The position numbers and the translations under genes were made by a program. The notes under the pieces are model-generated. The model had not been told where the DNA came from. It was given only the letters and a program-made list of their open reading frames with translations, and did not search any database. A stretch of 64,000 nucleotides of DNA, from contig OZ218950.1 of assembly GCA_965112735.1 (NCBI GenBank), positions 6,634,001 through 6,698,000 of the forward strand. The letters run 5' to 3'. Origin of the DNA: Phaeosaccion multiseriatum (taxonomy: Eukaryota > Protista > Ochrophyta, other classes). The stretch's first letter is position 1; the number at the start of each line of letters is the position of its first letter. This document shows positions 2,004 to 63,915 of this stretch, piece after piece.

Positions 2004-4712
<2,709 letters not shown>

Positions 4713-5820: not shown

Positions 5821-11053
<5,233 letters not shown>

Positions 11054-15375: not shown

Positions 15376-17308
15376 TCATCCCTTCGAAAGCAAGTTGGCG
15401 ATCTGCTCGCTTTGCATGCTCCGCTGAGGGGCAGAGGGCTTGCAGCGAGCATTGCCACATTGCCAATGCCTCTCCACCCGCACGATGAGCTCTCCTCCCT
15501 GAATCACTCCCTGTACCCTGCCGCCCCTCTTCTTCACACCGGGGAAGGATCTCCAATCTCCGCCGCACTTTGCACAAAACAACCCTCCTTTGTATCCGTG
15601 CTCGGCGGCGTCAACCAAAAGGCCTTCGTAGGAGTTTCCTCGGCCGCTCTTTCTTCTCTGCTTGTTGTTCTTCCCACTGTCCCCCACCCCTCCCACCCCT
15701 CCTCCTCCTCCTCCTCCTCCTCCTCCTCCTCCTCCTCCTCCTCCTCCTGTATCACCAACTGCTGCTGCTGCTGCTGCTGCTGCGTTGGGGCGAGGAGGGG
15801 GAGCAGCGGCTTCTTCTGAGAGAGAACAGCAACAAGGGCGGGGTGGACAAATAACGTGTACCGTGTCAGGACTTGGGGGGGGGGGGGGGGACACAAGGGT
15901 TGCATTTCTTTACAGGGCCGTCACGGGGGTCGGCGTACATCAATTAGATGAAACGGTTCCAATCAATTCAATCTTGCCAGAACGGAATGGATGCCAGCTC
16001 TACGCTGTTCATGCCCACCTTGGCCAAGGGTCTGCAGTGGTTTGAAGAAAAGGGGAGACACCGACACAGACTCTTCTCCCTCGTCAAAGGCCTCCGCCCC
16101 CACAACTCACCTCCGTCGCTGCTTCCCCCCGCGTCCTCCGTGGTGTGCTCATCAGGCTCCACCCCCTCCCTTTCCTCTCGCATGAGGGCCCCCTCCTCGA
16201 AAGCTTCAATGCTCTCATCGTCGCTGTTGCCCACCTCCTCTATCTCCTCCACCTCCTCCATCTCCTCCATCTCCTCCAGCTCCTCCCCCTCCTCCTCCTG
16301 CTGCTGCTCCTGTTGCTGTTGCTGCGCGTTATCGAGGAAGAAGCCGTTCCTCTCGTTATAGTAGGCTGCTGCTGCTGCCGCTTCCGCTGCTTCCTGTCCG
16401 GGAACATGGCCAAATGAAAGTCTCGTAATGTCGCCTCCTTCCTGCACCTCGACACCGCGTTGCACAAGTGGTGACGAGAGGGAGGCATCACCCCTGACCT
16501 TCTTCCCCTTCCCCGCTGCCCCTCGCCCCCGCCCCCTCTCCTCCTCCTCCTCCTCCTCCTCCTCCTCCTCCTCCTCCTCCTCCTCCTCCTCCTCCTTCTC
16601 CTTCTCCTCCTCCTCCTCGCCTCTCTCCGACCTCTTGCGCCTCGCATCAACTCCAGCCCCACTCATGGCCGTTGCCGGGCGCTTGGCTGACGCCCCCCAA
16701 CTGCTGCTGCTCCTGCTGCTGCCGCCACCGCTGCCCAGGTCATCCATGTCATGGTCCTTGTATAACCGCCGCCGCCGCCGCCGCCGCCCTTGGAGCTGCT
16801 GTTGCTCCTGCTCCTGCTCTTCCGCCAGCTGCCGCTCAGTCTCCTCCAATGCTTGCCAGTGTGATGCACACACGCCCCCCATCTTTGCGAGCCTGGAGCA
16901 ATTGTCTACACTGCATATGGTCTTCTTACCTGCCCCGTCTTTCTGCTTGGGGGACTTGGGCCTGACTTCGCGAAGGCCAGCCACAGCGACCGTCCCCTTG
17001 TAACCTTCCTCCCTGGTTTCATCCCGTGCCTGGGCGTGGCGGATGCAGGTTCCTCCCACAACGCGCCCCTTGTCACACCCCTCAACAGAGCATAGCTTTG
17101 GGTCCCCGTCGACTTTGTGGGCAACAGGTGACCCACTTCGTGCCTTGGAATGGCGGATGCAGGTACCTCCTGTTACTCGTCCCTTTTCGCACCCATCCAC
17201 TTCGCACCTCTTCCGGAGCGCACCATGGGAAATGCACACGCCCGAGTTGATTCTCTGCTTTGTGCAACCCTCAATACTGCAGATACGAGAGGGTGGGATC
17301 CTTCGCAT
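15376..17308 (-). CDS. WRKY19-like C-x4-C-x9-C-x2-H zinc-finger repeat protein (4 repeats) with a possible C-terminal Cys cluster
   Basis: Repeats: CSIEGCTKQRINSGVCISHG, CEVDGC..CIRH, CSVEGC..CIRH, CSVDNC..CASH. The probable intron 16110-15816 (GTGAGT...CTCAG) joins to exon 15815-15376 (CAKC...CGNARC). The unspliced frame would stop at 15968. Confidence 0.78.
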
Positions 17309-47055: not shown

Positions 47056-48309
47056 ATGACAGATGTGGCAGGACAAGCAGCAGCAGTAGCAGCGGTAGAC
47101 GCACCCACAGGGATGCGTGTCCAAGACCGGCTGGAGATCGGGCCTAATGTCCGAATCTCAGGCGCTTCTGTGCAAGTGCAGGGCTCGAGGGGGGAGGACG
47201 CAGCTGCGACGCACCCCCTCCCATCTCGGCTGGCGGCGATATCTTCTTCTCGCTTGGAAGGAAACGAGTGGGGGGGTTCTTTACATATAGTGGACCTTGA
47301 TTCTCTCTCTCTTCTCAGAAGCATTCCTTTGGTGAGCGGCACCGCCGATCTGTGTTGGCTGCGAGGAGATGGTGGCAAGAGTAGCACGCTCGCCGTCGGC
47401 GAAGACAGCGGCGACATTAGACTGTACGAGGTGCAGCCGGTGGAGGCGAGTGGTGGCCCTTCCACCGCAGGAGCGCAGGTGATGATTTCACACACCATGA
47501 CTTTAGCAGAACACCACGACCTCGTATCTTGCGTTCGGTCATGTCGCAGCACCACCAGCAGCAGTGGCAGCAGTGGTAGCAGTGGTGGTGGTGGTAGCGC
47601 TGCCTTCCTGCTGGCCTCGGGGAGCTGGGACCGCTCGGTCAAAGTCTGGGATGCCTCCTCCCCGGCCAACGACGCTTCCCTCTGCACCTTCCACGGCCAC
47701 TCGGATCACGTCCTCGACGTCGACTGGGACCCCAGCCCAGAAGCGTGCAATAACATCCTCGCCTCGGTGTCTCGGGATGGGACTCTGCGGCTGTGGGACC
47801 GCAGCAAGTGCTCAGCTCCGCCTCCGTCTTCCGTCCTACCCAACTCCGCCGTGGGTGCGTGCGTAGGCTACATTCGGTTCGAGTGCACACCACAAGCCTT
47901 GTCGTGGCACCCTTCCGAGCCCTGGATAGCGGTGGGGTGCGAGGATGGGAGTGTGGTGGTGGTCGATGTTCGGCGTGTTGGGGGTGCAGAAGGTACCCCA
48001 ATTATAGCAAAGAAGCAGCTGCACCGCCGAGCGTGTGTGTCGCGAGTAAGGTATGGTCCAGCCGCCGTTTGCGAGGGAGGAGAAGGAGGACCCACCGGGC
48101 CCTGGACTGGACTGGCTTGTGCGGCACATGATGGGACCGTGGTGTATGCATCCTCGAGTGGTGCTGGAGACAACAAGGACAAGGAGGGCAGGGCTTTATC
48201 TACGGCTCCTGCGCACTCAGATGCGGCTGCTGCGTTGGAATGGACAGGCGATAGACTCATCAGCGGGGGGTGGGACGGGGTGATGCTTCGTCATGTGCTC
48301 GGGGACTAG
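47056..48309 (+). CDS. WDR77: WD40 protein, methylosome protein 50 (MEP50/WDR77)-like, intronless
   Basis: SSRLEGNEWGGSL, GTADLCW, DSGDIRLYE, EHHDLVSCV, SGSWDRSVKVWD, PQALSWHP and GCEDGSVVVVD are colinear with MEP50 motifs (SSLSGRCWAGSL, GVADLTW, DSGAVELWE, EHDDIVSTV). Confidence 0.75.
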   Translation: MTDVAGQAAAVAAVDAPTGMRVQDRLEIGPNVRISGASVQVQGSRGEDAAATHPLPSRLAAISSSRLEGNEWGGSLHIVDLDSLSLLRSIPLVSGTADLCWLRGDGGKSSTLAVGEDSGDIRLYEVQPVEASGGPSTAGAQVMISHTMTLAEHHDLVSCVRSCRSTTSSSGSSGSSGGGGSAAFLLASGSWDRSVKVWDASSPANDASLCTFHGHSDHVLDVDWDPSPEACNNILASVSRDGTLRLWDRSKCSAPPPSSVLPNSAVGACVGYIRFECTPQALSWHPSEPWIAVGCEDGSVVVVDVRRVGGAEGTPIIAKKQLHRRACVSRVRYGPAAVCEGGEGGPTGPWTGLACAAHDGTVVYASSSGAGDNKDKEGRALSTAPAHSDAAAALEWTGDRLISGGWDGVMLRHVLGD

Positions 48310-56490: not shown

Positions 56491-57501
56491 TTAAGAGAGC
56501 CCTCCTTCCCCGTGTGCCCTGGCGCGCTCGACTGCGGCGATCAGAGCCTTGAGTGAGCGGGTTAGCCGGAGAGGCTCTTCTTCATCAGGTACCCCCCCCC
56601 CTCCAAGGCCCCGCACGACATCCTCCCCGCCCCCTCCTCCGCTTCCCCGTCCCCCTCCTCCTCTTCCTCCTTTCTCCGCCTCCGCCTCCTCCGCCTCCTC
56701 CTCCTCCTCCTCCAGCCTCCCCCTGAGCTCTTCAACCAGTTCCTCCGCTCGGTCCACCTCGTCCAACCGCAGCAGCGCTTCGCCCACCACAGCGTAGCTG
56801 GAGTGATCCGGCTGCAGGCCTGGACACAAGTTCGCGACAGCGTCCCACGCCCCTCCTCCTCCTCCTTCTCCTCCTCCTCCTCCTCCTCCTCCTCCTCCTC
56901 CTCCTCCTCCTCCTCCTCCTCCTCCTCCTCCTTCTCCTCCTCCTCCTTCTCCTCCTCCTGCTGCTGCTGCTCTTCCTCCACCCTGCTCTACCCTGGCCGT
57001 GTGCATACGGACATTCTTCCTGCCCTCCTCCTCCCCTCCGCTCTTCCTCTTCCTGCTCTTCCTCCTCCCTGCACTATCCTGACCGTGCGCATACGGACCT
57101 TCTTCCTGCCCTCCTCCTCCCCCCCGCTCTTCCTCCTGGCTCCGCAGCAGCGCCTGATCTGCCCTGAGCCACTCCCACACCATGACCACCTTCTCGTTCT
57201 GCCCCCCTCGGAGGCAAGCAGTCATTGCCCAGTTGTAGTGCTGGACGTTAGCCAACGCCCCTGTAACTTTCGCCCCGTCCACTGCCATCCCCGCCACCGG
57301 CTCCTCCTTCTCCTCCCTCCCTTGCGTCTGCCTCCACCCACCTGGGTTGGGTACCCCCCGTACCTCCGCGAGCAGGTCGAGCGAAGTGGCCCACTGTCCA
57401 GACTCTCCACACGCAATAATGGCAGCGGTGTACAAGCTGTGTCCCCAGCCCAACTCATCAAGGCCTTGCTTTCTCGTCCTCTCTTCCTCCTCCTCCTCCT
57501 C

Positions 57502-57542
<41 letters not shown>

Positions 57543-60024
57543 CCTTGGCCAGCCAGTCCAAGGCCTGCTGATACTGATACATCTTCCCGCACCAGTGAAT
57601 GAGGCTCGTGTAGGTGAGGCGACACGGCACCAAGCCCCACTCCTCCTTCATCTGTATCACCAACTGCTCCGCTCTGTCAAGTGCTCCCTCCTTGCCCAGC
57701 GCATCAATTGCCGCCCTGAATGACTGCACATTCGGCCGTAGCGCAGAAGTAGCCACGGCCCCTCCTCCTCGCCCGACCTCTTCACCCCGCTTCTCCTCCC
57801 CCTCTTCCCCCTTCTCTTCCTTCTCCTTGCCCCTTTCGCACAGCTCCTGGAGCAGCGCGACAGCTCCATCGGCGTCTCCACTCTGACGGTAACTCTCAAT
57901 GACAATATTGTACGTAATCACACAGGGATGAATGACGTCACCCTTACCCTTGCCCCTACCCTTGGCCTTGCCACTTCGCATCTCCTCAAAGAGCTCAAGA
58001 ACCATGCTTTGCTTCCCGACCTTTGCACAAGCGTCTATCAGACTGTTGTAGGTGACATTGTCCCGCTGCGCGACAACACCCACACCACCCATCCCTCGTC
58101 CTCCCTCTCCCTCATCCTGCCCCATGCCCACGCCTGCCCCTCCTCTCTCCCTCTCCCTCTCCCTCTCCTCCTCCCTCACGCCTCTGCCATCACCCATTTC
58201 CCTATACAGTGCCAAGGCTCTGTCCAGCCGCCCCATCTTCCCACATGCGTCAATGGCGGTGTTGTAGGCAATCGTCATGGTACTAGGGCCAATCCCTGCA
58301 GACGACCAACGCCCCGACTCGGCGAGACGCCGCAGCTCTGCCAGCAACTCAAGCGCTCTGTCCACCTCCCCGGCCTTGCCACAGGCGTCAATGGCAGCAC
58401 AGTACATGCGACCATCGGGCACATGACCTCTCCGGCGCACTTCCTCCAGCACCTCCATAGCCACCTCGAAGTGCCCCACCTTACCACACGCGTCCAAGGC
58501 GGCGGTAAAGCACGCCAGGTTGGGTACGATGCCTCTCACCTCCTGCATCTCGCGGAGTAGAGACAGCGCCATTTCGTACTCTCCGCACCGCCCGCACGCG
58601 TGAATGGCAGCGCTGTAGACGATCAAAGTTGGCTGCAGCTGCCAAGTTGCTGGAGCCGCCTGCCCATTCTTGCCTCCCCTCCGCCCCCTTGCTTCCCTTC
58701 CTCCTGCTCCCCCTCTCCCCTCTTGCCCCCCAACTCCCGATCTGGCTCCCCCCTGCCAGTGTGTGCCCAACGCCCCTACTAGAGGGCTTTGGAACTCTTC
58801 AAAGACCTCCATAGCAAGATCGAACTGCCTTCCTTTGCCACACGCGGATATGGCAGCCGTCCAGGCCACCACAGATGGGGGCAAACCGCGCCTCCGCATC
58901 TCATACAACAGATCCAACGCACGCACATAGTCACCGGCCGTGCTGCATGCGTGAATGGCGCCGCCAAAGCAGTACTCGTTGGCCCTAACCAAGCTGTTGG
59001 AATCCATCTCCTCCAGCAGGCGAGTGGCCCCCTGGACGTCGCCAACTCTCGCGCACGCATCAATGGCGGCGGCGTACATCCTCTCGTCGGGCACGATCCC
59101 ATCTTCTTGGCGAGCCTCTGCCAGCAGCTGCAGCGCGAGCTCCTTCCGCCGCGCCTTTGCACACGCGCGTATCGCAAGCGTGTACGTGCCAAGAGTCGGC
59201 CTCACCCCCCTCTCCCTCTGCTGCTGCTGCTGCATGTCCCGAAGCAGACGCACAGCCTCCAGCGAGAATTCTCCACTGCAGCAGGCCTGGATGGCCCCAC
59301 TATAGCAATACACATCGGGCGCCACCCCTCGTTCCTTCATGCCCTTGAACACCGCCAGCACCTCCCGCGGTCGTCCGGCTTTGGCACAAGCGCTAATTGC
59401 AGCGCTGCACATGGAGACGTTGGCATCCGGCTGTCCCACCACCATAGACTGCTGCTCCTGCTGAAGTTGTTGACGTCTGTGGTGAAGCTTCTCCTCTTCC
59501 AAAAAGTCTCGGAGCAGGGCCAGTGCTTCCCTCCAGCGCCCGCACCTCGTGGCCGCAATGATAGCAGCCTCGAATATAGATTGCTTGTCCTGAAAGGCGA
59601 GGCGCTGCTGCTCCCACGTCTGCTTCTGCGGAGGAGGGTTGTTCCTCACTTGTGCTTGCTTGATCTGCTGAAACACACTCTCCACGCCCTTCCACCGTCT
59701 TTCCGCACCGTGCCTCTTCATAGTGCGAATCAGCGACATGTATCCCGCTCGTCCTTCTCCCGGTGCAGCTCCTTTCGTCGCAGGAGCCGAATTTTTAGGG
59801 GGCGCGTCTCGTTCTCGTGTGGCATCCAGGCGAAAGGCTGCTGGCCTGGGCCGCTTCGATCCACCTCTCACGGGTTTGGTGTACCCGGAACTGTCGCTAC
59901 TGCTACTTGTTCTTCCACTGAGAGCCCTTGCCCTCCTGCAAGAAGCCTCCATGGCTTTCCTCATCTCTTTCGCGCCCAATTGATATAATAAGGTGGGGGT
60001 TTGGTTCATACCTTCAAGTGCCAT
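56491..60024 (-). CDS. Pentatricopeptide repeat (P-class PPR) protein, single exon, about 1177 aa
   Basis: More than a dozen 35-aa motifs (e.g. PDVYCYSGAIQAC, YAAAIDACARVGDVQGATRLLEEM, YNSLIDACAKVG) interrupted by low-complexity loops. First ATG at 60024. Confidence 0.93.
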
Positions 60025-60102
60025 CTCCCCCCTCCTCACTTCTCACTGTTCGCTGCTGCTCTTATCCAAGATCAAAGATCTTATCCTAAGGAGGCTCACC
60101 AC

Positions 60103-63097
60103 ATGGAGACATCCGCCCCGATCACTGCAGCGCAAGGCGTGAGGAGGAATTTGCTCGTTCCTTATCTGGATGGACTCCTCTCTGATCAGGTGAATTCCTT
60201 CCCTCCCTCGCCGTATCACGCCTCGTTGTAGTTGTACCGGCTACCTTCTCCCTCCCCACATTGTAGGGGGAGAGCTGTCGTGACGATAAATCGTCAAACT
60301 TACCCACCCACACACCTTACTCTGTCTTCTTTGTGGTGCTTTCTCTCTCGCTCAACAGCCGACCCAATGGACGAACCCCACCCCTGCTGGTGCTCAGTGG
60401 CTCTTCACGCCTCCTCCGTACGTGACGGGGGTGGACATGGAGAAGGAGACGGTGGAGATATTTAACCCCTCTTGGTACCGCACAGCAGACCTCACAGGGT
60501 GGTCGCTGAGGCTGGAGGGAGCTGCAGACGGGGGGGAGCGCTTCGTGTTTGAGGACGGCTACGGATTGCCTCGGAGAGCCTCCGTCACAGGTGAAGGCAG
60601 CAGAGAGGGGAGGAGACAGAAATGCAAGGCAGGGCTGCTGCTACCGCACATGCTTTCCTTCTCCCTTCTTTCTCTTGCAAAGCAAGGCAACGGGGCTGAT
60701 GAGTTCTTGGCGTGTCCTCTCCATCTCTTGAGTTTCTTTGCGTTGCCGGCACATCCCATCCCCATTTCCTTTTCTATTCTCAATTAGGCCTCTCCTCTCT
60801 ACTCGTCACCTTGCCCTCCTCTCCCCTCAGTGCGCTGCTCTGCTGAGGACCTTACGCTTCCCCAAAGGGAAGCGCTCGGCGGCCGCAACGTGAGCCACAA
60901 GGGGAGAGAGGGGGAGAGACAGGGGGGGGAGAAATAGCAGGGCGGGCGGGTCGTCGAATGGTCTCGCTTGCCCGCTTACGCTTGTTGTTGTAGTTGTTGC
61001 ATCTCAAAAGCTGTTCGAACCCTCTGCCTCGCTGGTCTCCTCTCAACCCCTCTCCTGCTGCCACTGGTGATTGCTTCCCTCTCCCGCCCCGGATCCCCCC
61101 CCCTTTTTAGCTCTTTTGGGAGCATAGCGGTAGTCTACAAGCTGCTTGCCAAGCCCTGGAAGAGCAGCAGCAGCAGCAACAACAGGAGGAAGAGGAGGAA
61201 GAGGAAGGGGAGGAGGAGGAAGAGGACGAGGAAGACGGGAGCGATGACGGTGGCAGGCGGGGGAGCCTTCGAAGGAGGAGGGCAGGCAACGACAGATGGA
61301 GGTCTGGAACCCGAGACGGCAAGCGGCAATCACCAAGGCGGCGCTATGCATGGGGCGTGTCTCTGCTGGACGGAGCGGGAAGAGTATCAGCGGGCCTATC
61401 TGCGGCGGTGGGAGGAGGAGGAGGAGGAGGAGAAGGAAGGGCAAACGGCCACGCCAATGGTCGTGGTCATGAGGGGCTGTGCTCTTCGGTGTTGCCCATG
61501 ATGCCCGGGGCGAGGCGGCTGCAGAGAGTGGCGCTGAGGAAGCTCACCCTGTGAGTACTTTAAATCTATGGAGGCAGCTGTAGTAGTAGAAGTAGTAGTA
61601 GTAGTTGTTGTTGTTCGTGGTGGTGGTGGTGTTGTTGTTGTCGTCGTTGTTTTTGTTGTTGTTAGTGCTGGTGTTGTTGTCGTTGTTGTTGTTGTTGGTG
61701 TTGGTGGTGGTGACGGTAACGGTGTCGTTCTGCTCTTGTTTGTTTGTTTGTTCGTTTGTTTGTTTTCCTGTATCTGAGTCGTTGGCTTCTTCAATGAGAA
61801 CGCCGATTTCCACACGGTCAAGCGCATACCCCGAGGCCTTACATGCCCCCCCCCCCTCCCCTCCCCTCCCCTCCCCTCCCCTCTCCATCTCGTAGGTTAC
61901 TGTGCTATATTCGTCTCGCCTGTCTGCTGAGCTCGGCCTTCTGGTGCCTTCGCAACCCTCTCGCCTTCCTCACCCTCACCGTCCTGTCCATAGCACTGGA
62001 CCTTTTGGCCCGTTGGACCGCTAAGCAGATTCTCCTCCCGATGGATGCTTTAGCCCTCGCGCTCTCAACCTTGGGAGATAGGTACGCTGAGTTAAGGGGG
62101 GGGGGGGCACGGAGGGAGGGAGGGAGGCGGCTAGAGTCTCAGTCTTGTTTGCCGATCGTTTCCCGTTTGCTGTCTGTTCTTCCTTTACTCACCCTTCACT
62201 CCTCCTCCTCCTCCTCCTCCCCCCTCCTCCTCCTCCACAGGCTGTCGTCGCTTGTGATGTTAGGCTGTCTGTCCATCCTCTACAGCGACTTCTACAACTC
62301 CTCCTCCTCCTCCTCCTCCTCCTCCTCCTCCTCCTCCTCCTACACGGGTTTCTTTGTGGGTCTGTTGGTGCTCGATGTGAGCTCCTTCTGGCTGCAATTG
62401 GCAGTGTACGCCCTCCTCGCCAACAAGCTCCGGCCGCCCACACGCAGAGAGGTGGAGACGGAGTTCATCGGGTACATGTGTGGTGCGTATCGTAACGTCA
62501 GTATTTATACGTAGCGGCGTTACGTTTCAATTTCACTTGATTGGCCCACCTTATGGATATCGTAGACACAATATCGCAGAGCTCGATGTCGTGGCTGCCT
62601 GATGCCTGGTGGGATCTCGTTCTCTGATTTGTTTCATGTTTGTTGTCCGTCCGCCATGCCCTCCCATGACGTTGTGATAGATAGTGATGTACTTCTACTG
62701 ATGTATGGGTTGTAGCAGTACTTGTTTCGGGAGGAAGGACCGACTGCGATTTGGCTGTGCCACACTAATGTGGGGTGCATTATCTGATAGCGAGCGCCAA
62801 CTTCCCTCCCTCCTTCTCCCTCCATCCTCTCCCTCCCCCCCAGCTCACTACCCCAAGCTGGTAACGGTCGTGTCCGTCTCCGGAGAGGCCTTCCTCCTGG
62901 TCATGTACGCTCTCTCTGCCACTTCCCGAGGGGCGCTCTTCCCAACCCCCCTGGAGCTGCAAGGGTGAGTGAGTCGCAGCCCTCGAATCCAACCCCTAAG
63001 AAGAAGAGCCAAAGGGATGCCCTCGGAGGCAACCCCCAATAAGACCCCCAATCAGAGGAGCCAGGGGGATGCCCTCGATGGTAACCCCCATATATAT

Positions 63098-63140
<43 letters not shown>

Positions 63141-63337
63141 ATATTATATATGACCCCCTTTATGACCCCCAATAAGAGGAGAGGAGAGACAAGGGATAGG
63201 CCTCGAATCAGCCTCGGGGGGGGGAGCTCTGGTCATGTTGCTGTGTGCTGCTCCACCTCTGTTGGCGACCTTGCCTGGCCGACCGACCGACCGACCGACC
63301 ACCTGCTCTGCTGCGCCTCTCTCTCTCCTTCCTCTCC

Positions 63338-63377
<40 letters not shown>

Positions 63378-63915
63378 CTCACTCTTCTCTTTCTTCTCCC
63401 TCCCTTCCTCCCCTCCCTCCGTCCCTCCCTCCCTCCTGTGTTCCCTTCTCGCCGTCGCAGACCATCACTGGGTGTGGATAGGGGAGGAGAAGAAGGAGAA
63501 GGGGCTGGAGATGCGAGCGGTGGGATGGGCCATCAGAGCGCCCCCTTGCCCGTGCTGCTTCACTATCGCTACCTCTTCTTTCTGATGCTGTGCTTCGTTT
63601 TGCGTCAGATGGCAGGCTTTGTGCAGGTGCGATGGAGAAAGGCAAAAAGGCCCAGTGGCTCGGCAGGGGCAGGGAGGGAGGGAGGGAGGGAGACGGAGAG
63701 GGAGGGAGAGAGAGAGAGAGGCATCTTCTGGTCCTTTTCACCCTCCTTTTCATGTCCCTTACCCTTTGCTCTCCGGCTACTGTATCACCAACTGCTACGA
63801 TCATGTGTCCTGCCGTGTGCCAACAAAACAGGTGCTCATCAGCCTGAGCCGCCTGAGCTACGGTGTCATGGCGGAGGAGGCAGCTCGGCAGGTCTTGCAA
63901 GGCAAGCAGCAGTGA
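60103..63915 (+). CDS. Lamin-tail-domain (LTD) fused to a degenerate phosphatidylinositol-synthase-like (CDP-alcohol phosphotransferase fold) membrane domain
   Basis: Exons 60103-60189, 60359-60590, 60831-60889, 61111-61550, 61896-62081, 62241-62471, about 62716-62964 (internal structure uncertain), 63461-63626 and 63832-63915 join in frame. LTD: ETVEIFNPS..ADLTGWSL..FVF..LPRRASVTV..LFW..VSLLDGAG. PIS-like: LLCYIRL, P-LAFL..LD, GDRLSSL..LSILY, LLVLDVSSFWLQL, GEAFLLVMY, FVLRQMAGFVQ. Confidence 0.7.

Follow-up and report, generated by a model that had tools for sequence, protein, structure and literature searches.

In the 64,000-nucleotide stretch of the Phaeosaccion multiseriatum genome analyzed here (the window; contig OZ218950.1), positions 60103–63915 of the + strand formed a single gene of nine exons, the predicted product of which was an integral membrane protein of approximately 540 residues. 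The sequence comparisons indicated that this protein is a genuine fusion of a lamin-tail domain (LTD) with a membrane domain, that the predicted six-helix domain is homologous over its full length to eukaryote-type phosphatidylinositol synthase (PIS), and that the gene belongs to an uncharacterized brown-algal family (Ectocarpus D8LHR1 and relatives). We regard the architecture and the PIS ancestry, taken together, as almost certain. On balance, the protein is best explained as a candidate PIS-derived, LTD-bearing adaptor of the ER or nuclear envelope.

All introns of the gene were canonical GT..AG introns with compatible phases, and the start and stop codons of the original prediction were confirmed. 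The features were as follows.

60103, + strand: ATG; stop codon at 63913–63915
60103..60189, + strand: exon 1, with the start codon and an N-terminal motif conserved in the family, V-[PR]-R-x-L-L-x-P-x-L-D; GT donor at 60190
60359..60590, + strand: exon 2, conserved W-L-F-x-P-P-P-Y segment and first LTD beta-strands; phase 1 at its end
60831..60889, + strand: exon 3, middle part of the LTD; AG/GT borders, phase 1 to 0
61111..61550, + strand: exon 4, L-F-W strand, acidic and basic inserts and last LTD strands (about 61357–61401), in one frame
3' part of exon 4, + strand: Gly-rich linker, then juxtamembrane segment (61492–61550), in the same frame as the LTD strands
61896..62081, + strand: exon 5, TM1 and TM2 with the first part of TM3; altered CDP-alcohol phosphotransferase signature at 61999–62081
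62241..62482, + strand: exon 6, remainder of TM3, (TCC)n poly-Ser loop insert (62299–62340) and TM4 with L-D-V-S-S-F-W-L-Q-L
62844..62964, + strand: exon 7, TM5 with G-E-A-F (PIS: G-N-E-x-F)
63461..63626, + strand: exon 8, variable loop and TM6
63832..63915, + strand: exon 9, C-terminal helix and stop codon

The window was searched with single exons or natural ORFs rather than with a joined spliced protein, and all nine exons were colinear with the brown-algal family, showing approximately 35–46% identity per exon to the family protein P0009. Exon 1 matched the N-termini of the family proteins P0007–P0010 in the alignment, and exon 2 showed 41.5% identity (E=3e-13) with the LTD exon of Discosporangium (L003:4146-4331). 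Exon 3 gave a weak match to positions 6152–6181 of the Discosporangium locus L003 and was placed by position at the C-C-P-G-K segment of the family. In exon 4, GSLRRRR lay opposite GSLRRKE and VSLLDGAGRVSAGLS opposite VKLLNARGREVASLT, and the segment before the membrane domain paired with L-P-G-V-K-R-x-Q. Exon 5 had phmmer matches in brown-algal proteins and an hhalign match to the PIS profile; exon 6 was alignable to the family, its TM4 pairing with the L-D-x-x-S-H-W motif of PIS; and exon 7 paired with V-S-x-G-N-E-A-F-L of the family and C-x-G-N-E-x-F of PIS. Exon 8 paired with W-M-x-L-M-V-C-C-x-x-R-Q-L, and exon 9, which paired with I-S-M-S-x-L-S-S-G-V-I, showed 56% identity to L002:4555-4629 (E=1.4e-6). 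The intron after G-D at the end of exon 5 was placed identically in the loci L001, L002, and L003, and the intron after V-Q in exon 8 was in the same place in L002. The window gene thus shares with D8LHR1 and P0001–P0010 the domain order (LTD, linker, PIS-like domain), the nine-exon colinearity, these intron positions, and a motif replacing the catalytic signature. It differs from its brown-algal relatives in having additional acidic, basic, and poly-Ser inserts and in lacking their Arg/Ser-rich C-terminal tail. Several of the public gene models of the family are split or truncated.

The exon structure also bears on whether the LTD and membrane exons belong to one gene, as had been predicted, or whether a splicing model has wrongly joined two neighboring genes, one for an LTD protein and the other for a membrane protein starting at Met-Met in exon 4. 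In-frame Met codons do precede the juxtamembrane segment, both in the window and in L003, and the annotation of the Discosporangium locus cuts it into two models. Exon 4 is moreover open in a second frame, so that openness alone proves little, and we dropped it as coding evidence. Against two genes, the final strands of the LTD and the juxtamembrane segment both lie in exon 4, about 30 codons apart in one frame, and the matching exon of L001 lacks Met. Full-length proteins containing both the LTD and the membrane domain were found in several species (P0007–P0010 from Ectocarpus, Pylaiella, EukProt, and Logan; 519–562 aa). Among these, P0009 was encoded by an uninterrupted ORF of 519 codons in four independent transcript-like contigs of approximately 2.5 kb from four runs, which were intronless and coded for both halves. 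In P0004 the last LTD exon was spliced onto the membrane domain, and in L003 the LTD exon lay upstream of the membrane exons. We therefore consider the two-gene explanation hardly credible.

Exon 2 alone matched the Pfam LTD model (PF00932) with E=1.4e-4 and 22.6 bits; the score was low because the exon covers only model positions 22–66 of 109, and the family alignment located the further strands in exons 3 and 4. The brown-algal P0009 scored 46 bits (E=7.7e-12), over the cutoff of 34.3. When the LTD profile A6 was compared with PDB sequences, all of the best eight matches were lamin B1 or A/C tails (E=0.012–0.45); the lamin-tail E-values as a whole were marginal (0.012–0.9). The lamin tails (lamin B1, 3JT0/2KPW/3UMN; lamin A/C, 1IFR/1IVT) were the best solved relatives, aligned over nearly the whole domain with a common L-[IL]-W-K-N-Q strand. 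The acidic insert and the basic stretch predicted earlier were both present in exon 4, as an acidic run at about 61159–61248 and a basic run at about 61255–61344, and both were window-specific insertions within the LTD. The description of the basic stretch as an NLS-like RRRR needs correction: part of it is the conserved LTD strand GSLRR[KR], and what remains is an insert of low complexity that brown algae do not have. There was no conservation between this insert and the brown-algal Arg/Ser tail, and the positions of basic stretches were not conserved in the family.

Neither a central coiled-coil rod nor a C-terminal CaaX box, the criteria for a lamin, was present in the window protein, which has only about 45 residues before the LTD core and ends in G-K-Q-Q. 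Its LTD also differs from that of lamins in lying at the N-terminus and in being attached through membrane helices, not through a farnesyl group. Koreny and Field (PMC5630835), who listed Ectocarpus siliculosus D8LHR1 as an LTD-like protein in 2016, excluded the LTD family of this type from lamins, since it has no coiled coil. LTDs are found in many non-lamin proteins, including many non-nuclear bacterial ones; the LTD alone is therefore insufficient as the pointer to the nuclear envelope that it had been taken to be.

The PIS-like character assigned to the membrane region was upheld by profile comparison. In hhalign, the family profile A4, built from an alignment of low diversity (Neff 1.8), matched the PIS profile A7 with 98.0% probability and E=2.6e-13 over 205 columns (PIS 20–226 of 230), and the membrane piece of the window itself matched with 83.7% probability and E=8e-6. 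A7 was the profile of nine Pfam-verified canonical PI-synthase-type proteins, which, from the yeast and human enzymes, we take to be PI synthases rather than another CDP-alcohol subfamily. Each of the six helices was matched, in the same order, and the landmarks in common were Y-x-R in TM1; D1, G, and D4-R of the signature; L-D-x-x-x-x-W in TM4; and G-N-E-x-F in TM5. The domain thus resembles PIS (yeast Pis1/human CDIPT type, PF01066) in homologous TM1–TM6 and a membrane core of similar size, whereas the long variable loop before TM6 and the N-terminal LTD set the family apart.

Could this similarity be no more than that of generic hydrophobic helices, in both the profile match and the structural ranking? 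PF01066, against which control ORFs scored 49–70 bits, gave no match at E up to 10 with any window exon or family member. The membrane half had no Pfam, NCBIfam, or PDB sequence match when single exons, the natural ORF 61843–62511, and family domains were searched, and the profile A1 had none among PDB sequences. A word search with the same ORF among proteins of 123–390 aa found no match, and an exhaustive phmmer search yielded three fragments from brown algae, with no canonical PIS among the matches. The hhalign comparison of the family with E. coli PgsA was also empty; PgsA itself aligned with PIS over only 84 columns, and the null result arises because PgsA and PIS have only the motif region in common, which is lost in the family. 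AlphaFold2 modeled the P0009 membrane domain with a moderate pLDDT of 67.7; a model of P0001 from four sequences (pLDDT 52) was discarded. No single Foldseek match with the P0009 model was significant (best E=0.73, probability 0.80, TM 0.50 by target), but CDP-alcohol phosphotransferases made up 11 of the 13 top chains and 22 of the top 50, and six subfamilies of them led the list with probabilities of 0.4–0.8 as against ≤0.18 for all others. Together with the match across six ordered helices, this ranking makes an origin other than PIS very improbable.

In CDP-alcohol phosphotransferases, the signature Asp residues are essential, since they coordinate the catalytic metals. A regular-expression search for the signature D-x2-D-G-x2-A-R...G-x3-D-x3-D found none in the window and found it in E. 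coli PgsA, and the residue map likewise bore out the loss of the canonical metal-binding form. In the profile alignment to canonical PIS, the window motif retains D1, the A, a K in place of the R, D4, and the R that follows it; at D2 it has A, at the first Gly R, at the second Gly A, and at D3 S. These are the four losses (D2, D3, and the two Gly) that had been predicted. The predicted end of the motif (62081) was correct, and its start was at 61999 rather than about 61996. The family A-R could be equated with the canonical A-R by assuming a loop insertion of 5 residues; we rejected this idea, since hhalign sets the family R under the canonical Gly. D2 and D3 are missing in all family members, with an invariant Arg in place of the Gly after D2, and A-R is missing in most. 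The residues specific to PIS (H110, H125-K126, and Y139-Y140) are missing as well, whereas D1, D4-R, the Asp and Trp of TM4, and G-N-E-x-F are retained. Half of the four signature Asp residues are missing and, in the window, both Gly residues as well; CDP-diacylglycerol-dependent transfer is therefore most likely lost, and canonical catalysis has in our judgment probably disappeared.

The motif had been described as eroded; it was instead replaced. The replacement motif D-x-L-[ASG]-R-W...P-M-D...G-D-R is present in the window and is the best conserved segment of the protein (70% invariant versus 44% for the LTD), and its charged residues are invariant in every family sequence covering the region. 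This conservation points to a retained function of the pocket rather than to a mere anchor. The invariant D, R-W, Q, P-M-D, and G-D-R would also fit an active enzyme of altered chemistry, in which the replacement motif forms a new active site for another lipid or nucleotide transfer and the LTD regulates or localizes the activity, and the retained residues of the old site agree with this. Such an enzyme seems quite unlikely, as the required D2 and D3, together with the PIS-specific residues, are gone.

To return to the adaptor, the protein runs from a short conserved N-terminus through the LTD and an acidic/Gly-rich linker to a basic juxtamembrane helix, which the six-helix domain follows. The protein lacks a signal peptide, and positive charge precedes TM1 (+2/+3 before TM1 and −1 after it); the LTD is therefore expected on the cytosolic or nucleoplasmic side, as is the former active site. 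Conservation is highest in the replacement motif and at several polar positions within the membrane, and the old active-site pocket was therefore probably kept. It probably binds a ligand or serves in regulation; a lipid head group or a nucleotide is the most plausible candidate. The PIS-derived domain would act as a membrane anchor and possibly as a lipid sensor, and the LTD would recruit a protein or chromatin partner. We propose this adaptor role at the ER or nuclear envelope tentatively, as somewhat short of probable.

The lamin B receptor offers an analogy to such an arrangement, with its soluble module facing the nucleoplasm and its multi-pass domain of a lipid-enzyme family, and an Arg/Ser-rich stretch occurs also in brown-algal members. 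There is no homology between the two: Pfam gave no Tudor or sterol-reductase match. The reductase domain of the lamin B receptor is catalytically active. IPCT-DIPPS (4MND) and AF2299 (4O6M), which were among the Foldseek matches, also combine an N-terminal cytoplasmic domain with a six-helix transferase core; in these proteins the extra domain is nucleotidyltransferase-like and the transferase is active, whereas the window protein has a predicted Ig fold and has lost the signature.

PI synthase is an ER enzyme. The protein may accordingly be a general ER or chloroplast-ER protein outside the nuclear context, with the LTD as a cytosolic Ig-like binding module in an ochrophyte-specific lipid or membrane-contact role. 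The range of the family, seen so far in ochrophytes only, the occurrence of LTDs outside lamins, and the shifting positions of the basic stretches are consistent with this explanation. It is nevertheless unlikely, as the best structural relatives of the LTD by sequence are eukaryotic lamin tails, a likeness that extends to the L-[IL]-W-K-N-Q strand. The two readings also overlap, since the ER passes without a break into the outer nuclear membrane. A more specific form of the adaptor hypothesis, that ochrophytes use a membrane-integral "lamin tail" in which an LTD on a PI-synthase-derived anchor at the inner nuclear membrane faces chromatin and the remodeled pocket senses a lipid of the nuclear envelope, such as CDP-diacylglycerol or PI, is a speculative extension that we hold to be improbable.

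To our knowledge, no canonical lamin has been reported in brown algae. In the literature searched, we found no useful reports on D8LHR1 or W7TNN4, no paper describing the protein, and no description of a PI-synthase link for the D8LHR1-type protein. Nor did we find a described case of a PI-synthase descendant that lacks the canonical signature yet is strongly constrained, or a paper pairing "CDP-alcohol" with "pseudoenzyme". The protein may thus be the first of its kind, in which the evolution of an essential lipid enzyme has taken a new course. Ectocarpus and Nannochloropsis are genetically tractable, and with the family in Ectocarpus and apparently in Nannochloropsis, localization and knock-out tests should be feasible; Nannochloropsis gaditana W7TNN4 is probably a further member, as judged from its entry in a supplement listing. 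A lamin-type Ig domain tied directly to the membrane bears on the evolution of the nuclear envelope, the proteins of which are almost unknown in this algal group, where lamins are absent or highly divergent (PMC5630835). If the inner-nuclear-membrane reading were true, the protein would couple the lipid state of the membrane to nuclear organization.

The LTD (lamin-tail domain, Pfam PF00932) gene of the window has nine exons on the plus strand, from the ATG at 60103 to the stop codon at 63913–63915, all with AG/GT borders and compatible phases.

Exons of the LTD gene (window positions)
60103–60189, plus strand: exon 1, carrying the N-terminal motif of the family (alignment with full-length relatives)
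60359–60590, plus strand: exon 2, Pfam LTD match
60831–60889, plus strand: exon 3, remaining LTD strands, together with exon 4
61111–61550, plus strand: exon 4, remaining LTD strands and juxtamembrane segment
61896–62081, plus strand: exon 5, within natural ORF 61843–62511
62241–62482, plus strand: exon 6, within natural ORF 61843–62511
62844–62964, plus strand: exon 7
63461–63626, plus strand: exon 8
63832–63915, plus strand: exon 9, ending in the stop codon

Single exons or natural ORFs of the window served as queries, and structure prediction and profiles were built from natural database proteins of relatives. Intron 5 (62082–62240, 159 nt) is open in frame, so both exon 5 and exon 6 fall within the natural ORF 61843–62511. 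Once translated and aligned with the family, this intron stood out as a clean insert separating the conserved G-D from R-L, which confirmed the exon 5/6 splice; retention of the intron would add 53 residues after the motif G-D, within TM3, without truncation. A second frame of 177 codons (60968–61501, plus strand) is also open across exon 4, which is purine-rich and of low complexity, and therefore ORF openness there is no evidence of coding by itself. The introns were rich in microsatellites, with (GTT/GTG)n in intron 4 (61590–61720) and (TA)n, (GACC)n, and (CT)n in intron 7 (63090–63150, 63279–63300, and 63336–63376). A coding microsatellite, (TCC)n at 62299–62340, gives a run of 14 Ser in the TM3–TM4 loop that was absent from all brown-algal relatives. 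Identity to P0009, a full-length brown-algal protein, was 35–46% for most exons and 23–26% for exons 3 and 4, which are short or insert-rich; introns were shorter than in the brown-algal relatives. These features suggest that the lineage lies outside the brown algae sampled or at their base.

The window has the character of eukaryotic, algal DNA: spliceosomal introns were numerous, a large PPR gene and WRKY19-type zinc fingers were present, and G+C was 55–62%. The intronless PPR gene (56491–60039, minus strand; 1182 aa; PPR repeats E=1e-77) lies head to head with the LTD gene, its 5' end about 65–80 bp from the ATG at 60103, implying that the two genes share a very short promoter region or have UTRs that overlap.

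Neighbouring intronless ORFs (window positions)
2769–4709, plus strand: protein kinase with a C-terminal RING finger
15971–17308, minus strand: protein with three WRKY19-type zinc fingers
47056–48306, plus strand: WD40 protein

Across 1.84 billion proteins, an exhaustive phmmer search with exons 5 and 6 yielded just three representatives, all of them brown-algal fragments (Hapterophycus, Choristocarpus, and Discosporangium). On the Discosporangium contig (L003), the membrane exons were preceded, on their own strand, by an LTD exon (4146–4331, E=3e-13 to window exon 2), and the exon encoding TM1 had no in-frame Met in this contig or in the brown-algal contig L001. Profile word searches recovered full-length proteins of 519–562 aa from Ectocarpus sp. 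6, Pylaiella, EukProt, and Logan, each with an LTD and a membrane-profile match of about E=1e-110; the LTD of P0009 scored 46 bits, over the Pfam cutoff. Four sequencing runs gave four contigs of ~2.5 kb, assembled independently, with the uninterrupted 1560-nt ORF of P0009. Because brown-algal genomic copies have many long introns, these contigs were read as transcripts, and they are direct evidence for one mRNA carrying both halves. A single window exon encodes, in one frame and about 30 codons apart, the final strands of the LTD and the juxtamembrane segment, and two introns, one following G-D and one following V-Q, occupy positions common to the window and brown algae. The fusion of LTD and membrane exons in one gene, as originally predicted, is thus real.

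Public gene models of the family were often wrong. The Discosporangium locus was split into two models (L003, 2744–7395 and 9393–10870); the Choristocarpus model (L002, 347–3745 and 4555–4629) was missing TM1 as well as the conserved final exon and read into an intron; and the Scytosiphon model (L004, 470–576) began at a Met within the final LTD exon, as the contig goes no further. The brown-algal members reaching the C-terminus (P0004 and P0006–P0010) had an Arg/Ser-rich basic tail with a near-invariant terminal S-R-S-R-x-R, possibly serving as an Arg-based ER signal or as a chromatin or kinase site of the RS type. The window protein ends earlier (G-K-Q-Q), without this tail.

Exon 2 by itself matched Pfam LTD at E=1.4e-4 (22.6 bits), below the cutoff because only model positions 22–66 of 109 were present. 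Against PDB, the top matches of the family LTD profile were lamin tails only (lamin B1 3JT0 at E=0.012, then 2KPW, 3UMN, and 7DTG, followed by lamin A/C), with marginal E-values and a consistent ranking; the aligned region took in the L-[IL]-W-K-N-Q strand. When exon 4 was aligned with full-length relatives, GSLRRRR paired with the family GSLRRKE and VSLLDGAGRVSAGLS with VKLLNARGREVASLT, and two low-complexity insertions specific to the window, one acidic and one basic, fell between these LTD strands. The basic stretch previously described as NLS-like was therefore in part a conserved beta-strand, and its remainder was a species-specific insert. An invariant W-L-F-x-P-P-P-[YF] preceded the LTD core (window 60398–60421; residues about 40–47 of P0007–P0010); it resembles a PPxY WW-domain ligand but may be no more than the opening strand of the domain.

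The membrane half was not recognised by HMM libraries or PDB sequence searches. AlphaFold2 gave a moderate model of the P0009 membrane domain (pLDDT 67.7; helices 70–87), with which Foldseek found no significant single match (best E=0.73, probability 0.80, TM 0.50 by target). CDP-alcohol phosphotransferases of six subfamilies accounted for 11 chains among the top 13 and 22 among the top 50, with probabilities of about 0.13–0.8 (best PgsA and PIPS chains, 0.4–0.8) against ≤0.18 for all others. For a canonical set, metagenome contigs were scanned with a degenerate PI-synthase (PIS) motif pattern, and intronless ORFs with the full signature were kept; nine were verified as PF01066 members (49–70 bits). 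We take this set to be PI synthases rather than another CDP-alcohol subfamily by reference to yeast Pis1 and human CDIPT; no eukaryotic PIS was found among its PDB matches at E≤0.001. By hhalign, the family profile matched the set with 98.0% probability (E=2.6e-13) over 205 columns, positions 20–226 of 230, spanning TM1 through the C-terminal helix, and the exon 5–6 piece of the window matched at 83.7% (E=8e-6). In a control, the alignment of the PIS set with E. coli PgsA was confined to 84 columns surrounding the catalytic motif, and the family had no hhalign match to E. coli PgsA. The family is thus specifically PIS-like, having lost the superfamily-wide part, and this profile comparison bore out the predicted PIS-like nature of the membrane half.

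Signature D-x2-D-G-x2-A-R...G-x3-D-x3-D (D1–D4, its four Asp) as aligned by hhalign
D1: kept in the window; kept in brown algae
D2: A in the window; S/G/A in brown algae
G of D-G: R in the window; R, invariant, in brown algae
A-R: A-K in the window; S-S or S-R in brown algae
Second G: A in the window; mostly G in brown algae, A in early-branching Discosporangiales
D3: S in the window; A/S in brown algae
D4-R: kept in the window; kept in brown algae

The PIS-invariant H110, H125-K126, and Y139-Y140 were likewise lost, and only 9 of 30 PIS-invariant positions were retained in all long members. Among the four full-length brown-algal proteins, the motif segment was the best-conserved part, 70% invariant versus 44% for the N-terminus and LTD and 9% for the variable loop. 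Its consensus, D-x-L-[ASG]-R-W-x-S-x-Q...P-M-D...G-D-R, was also true of the window. The pattern of losses was as the original prediction described, and a gene joining an LTD to a membrane domain with an altered signature was confirmed; the structural interpretation held apart from the term "eroded", since the segment has been replaced and conserved.

Ectocarpus D8LHR1 and Nannochloropsis W7TNN4 were listed as "LTD-like domain-containing proteins" and excluded from lamins for having no coiled coil, without comment on their membrane half (Koreny and Field 2016, PMC5630835). In the printed, OCR-noisy W7TNN4 sequence, a hydrophobic half follows with an L-D-x-A-A-R-Y...A-D-R pattern, which suggests that the family may reach eustigmatophytes. 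Our literature search found neither a link between an LTD and PI synthase nor a description of a CDP-alcohol-transferase pseudoenzyme.

A hydrophobic N-terminal signal was absent, and the charge was basic before TM1 (+2/+3) and −1 beyond it. As the N-terminus and active site of canonical PIS are cytosolic, the LTD should face the cytosol or nucleoplasm, adjoining what was once the active site. Metal binding in the CDP-alcohol phosphotransferase superfamily depends on the signature Asp, and hence canonical catalysis has probably been lost. That the new motif is under strong constraint suggests that the pocket is retained for a ligand; the main rival reading is that the protein is a neofunctionalised enzyme. 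We favour the hypothesis that it would act as a membrane adaptor or sensor, with a predicted location in the ER/nuclear envelope.
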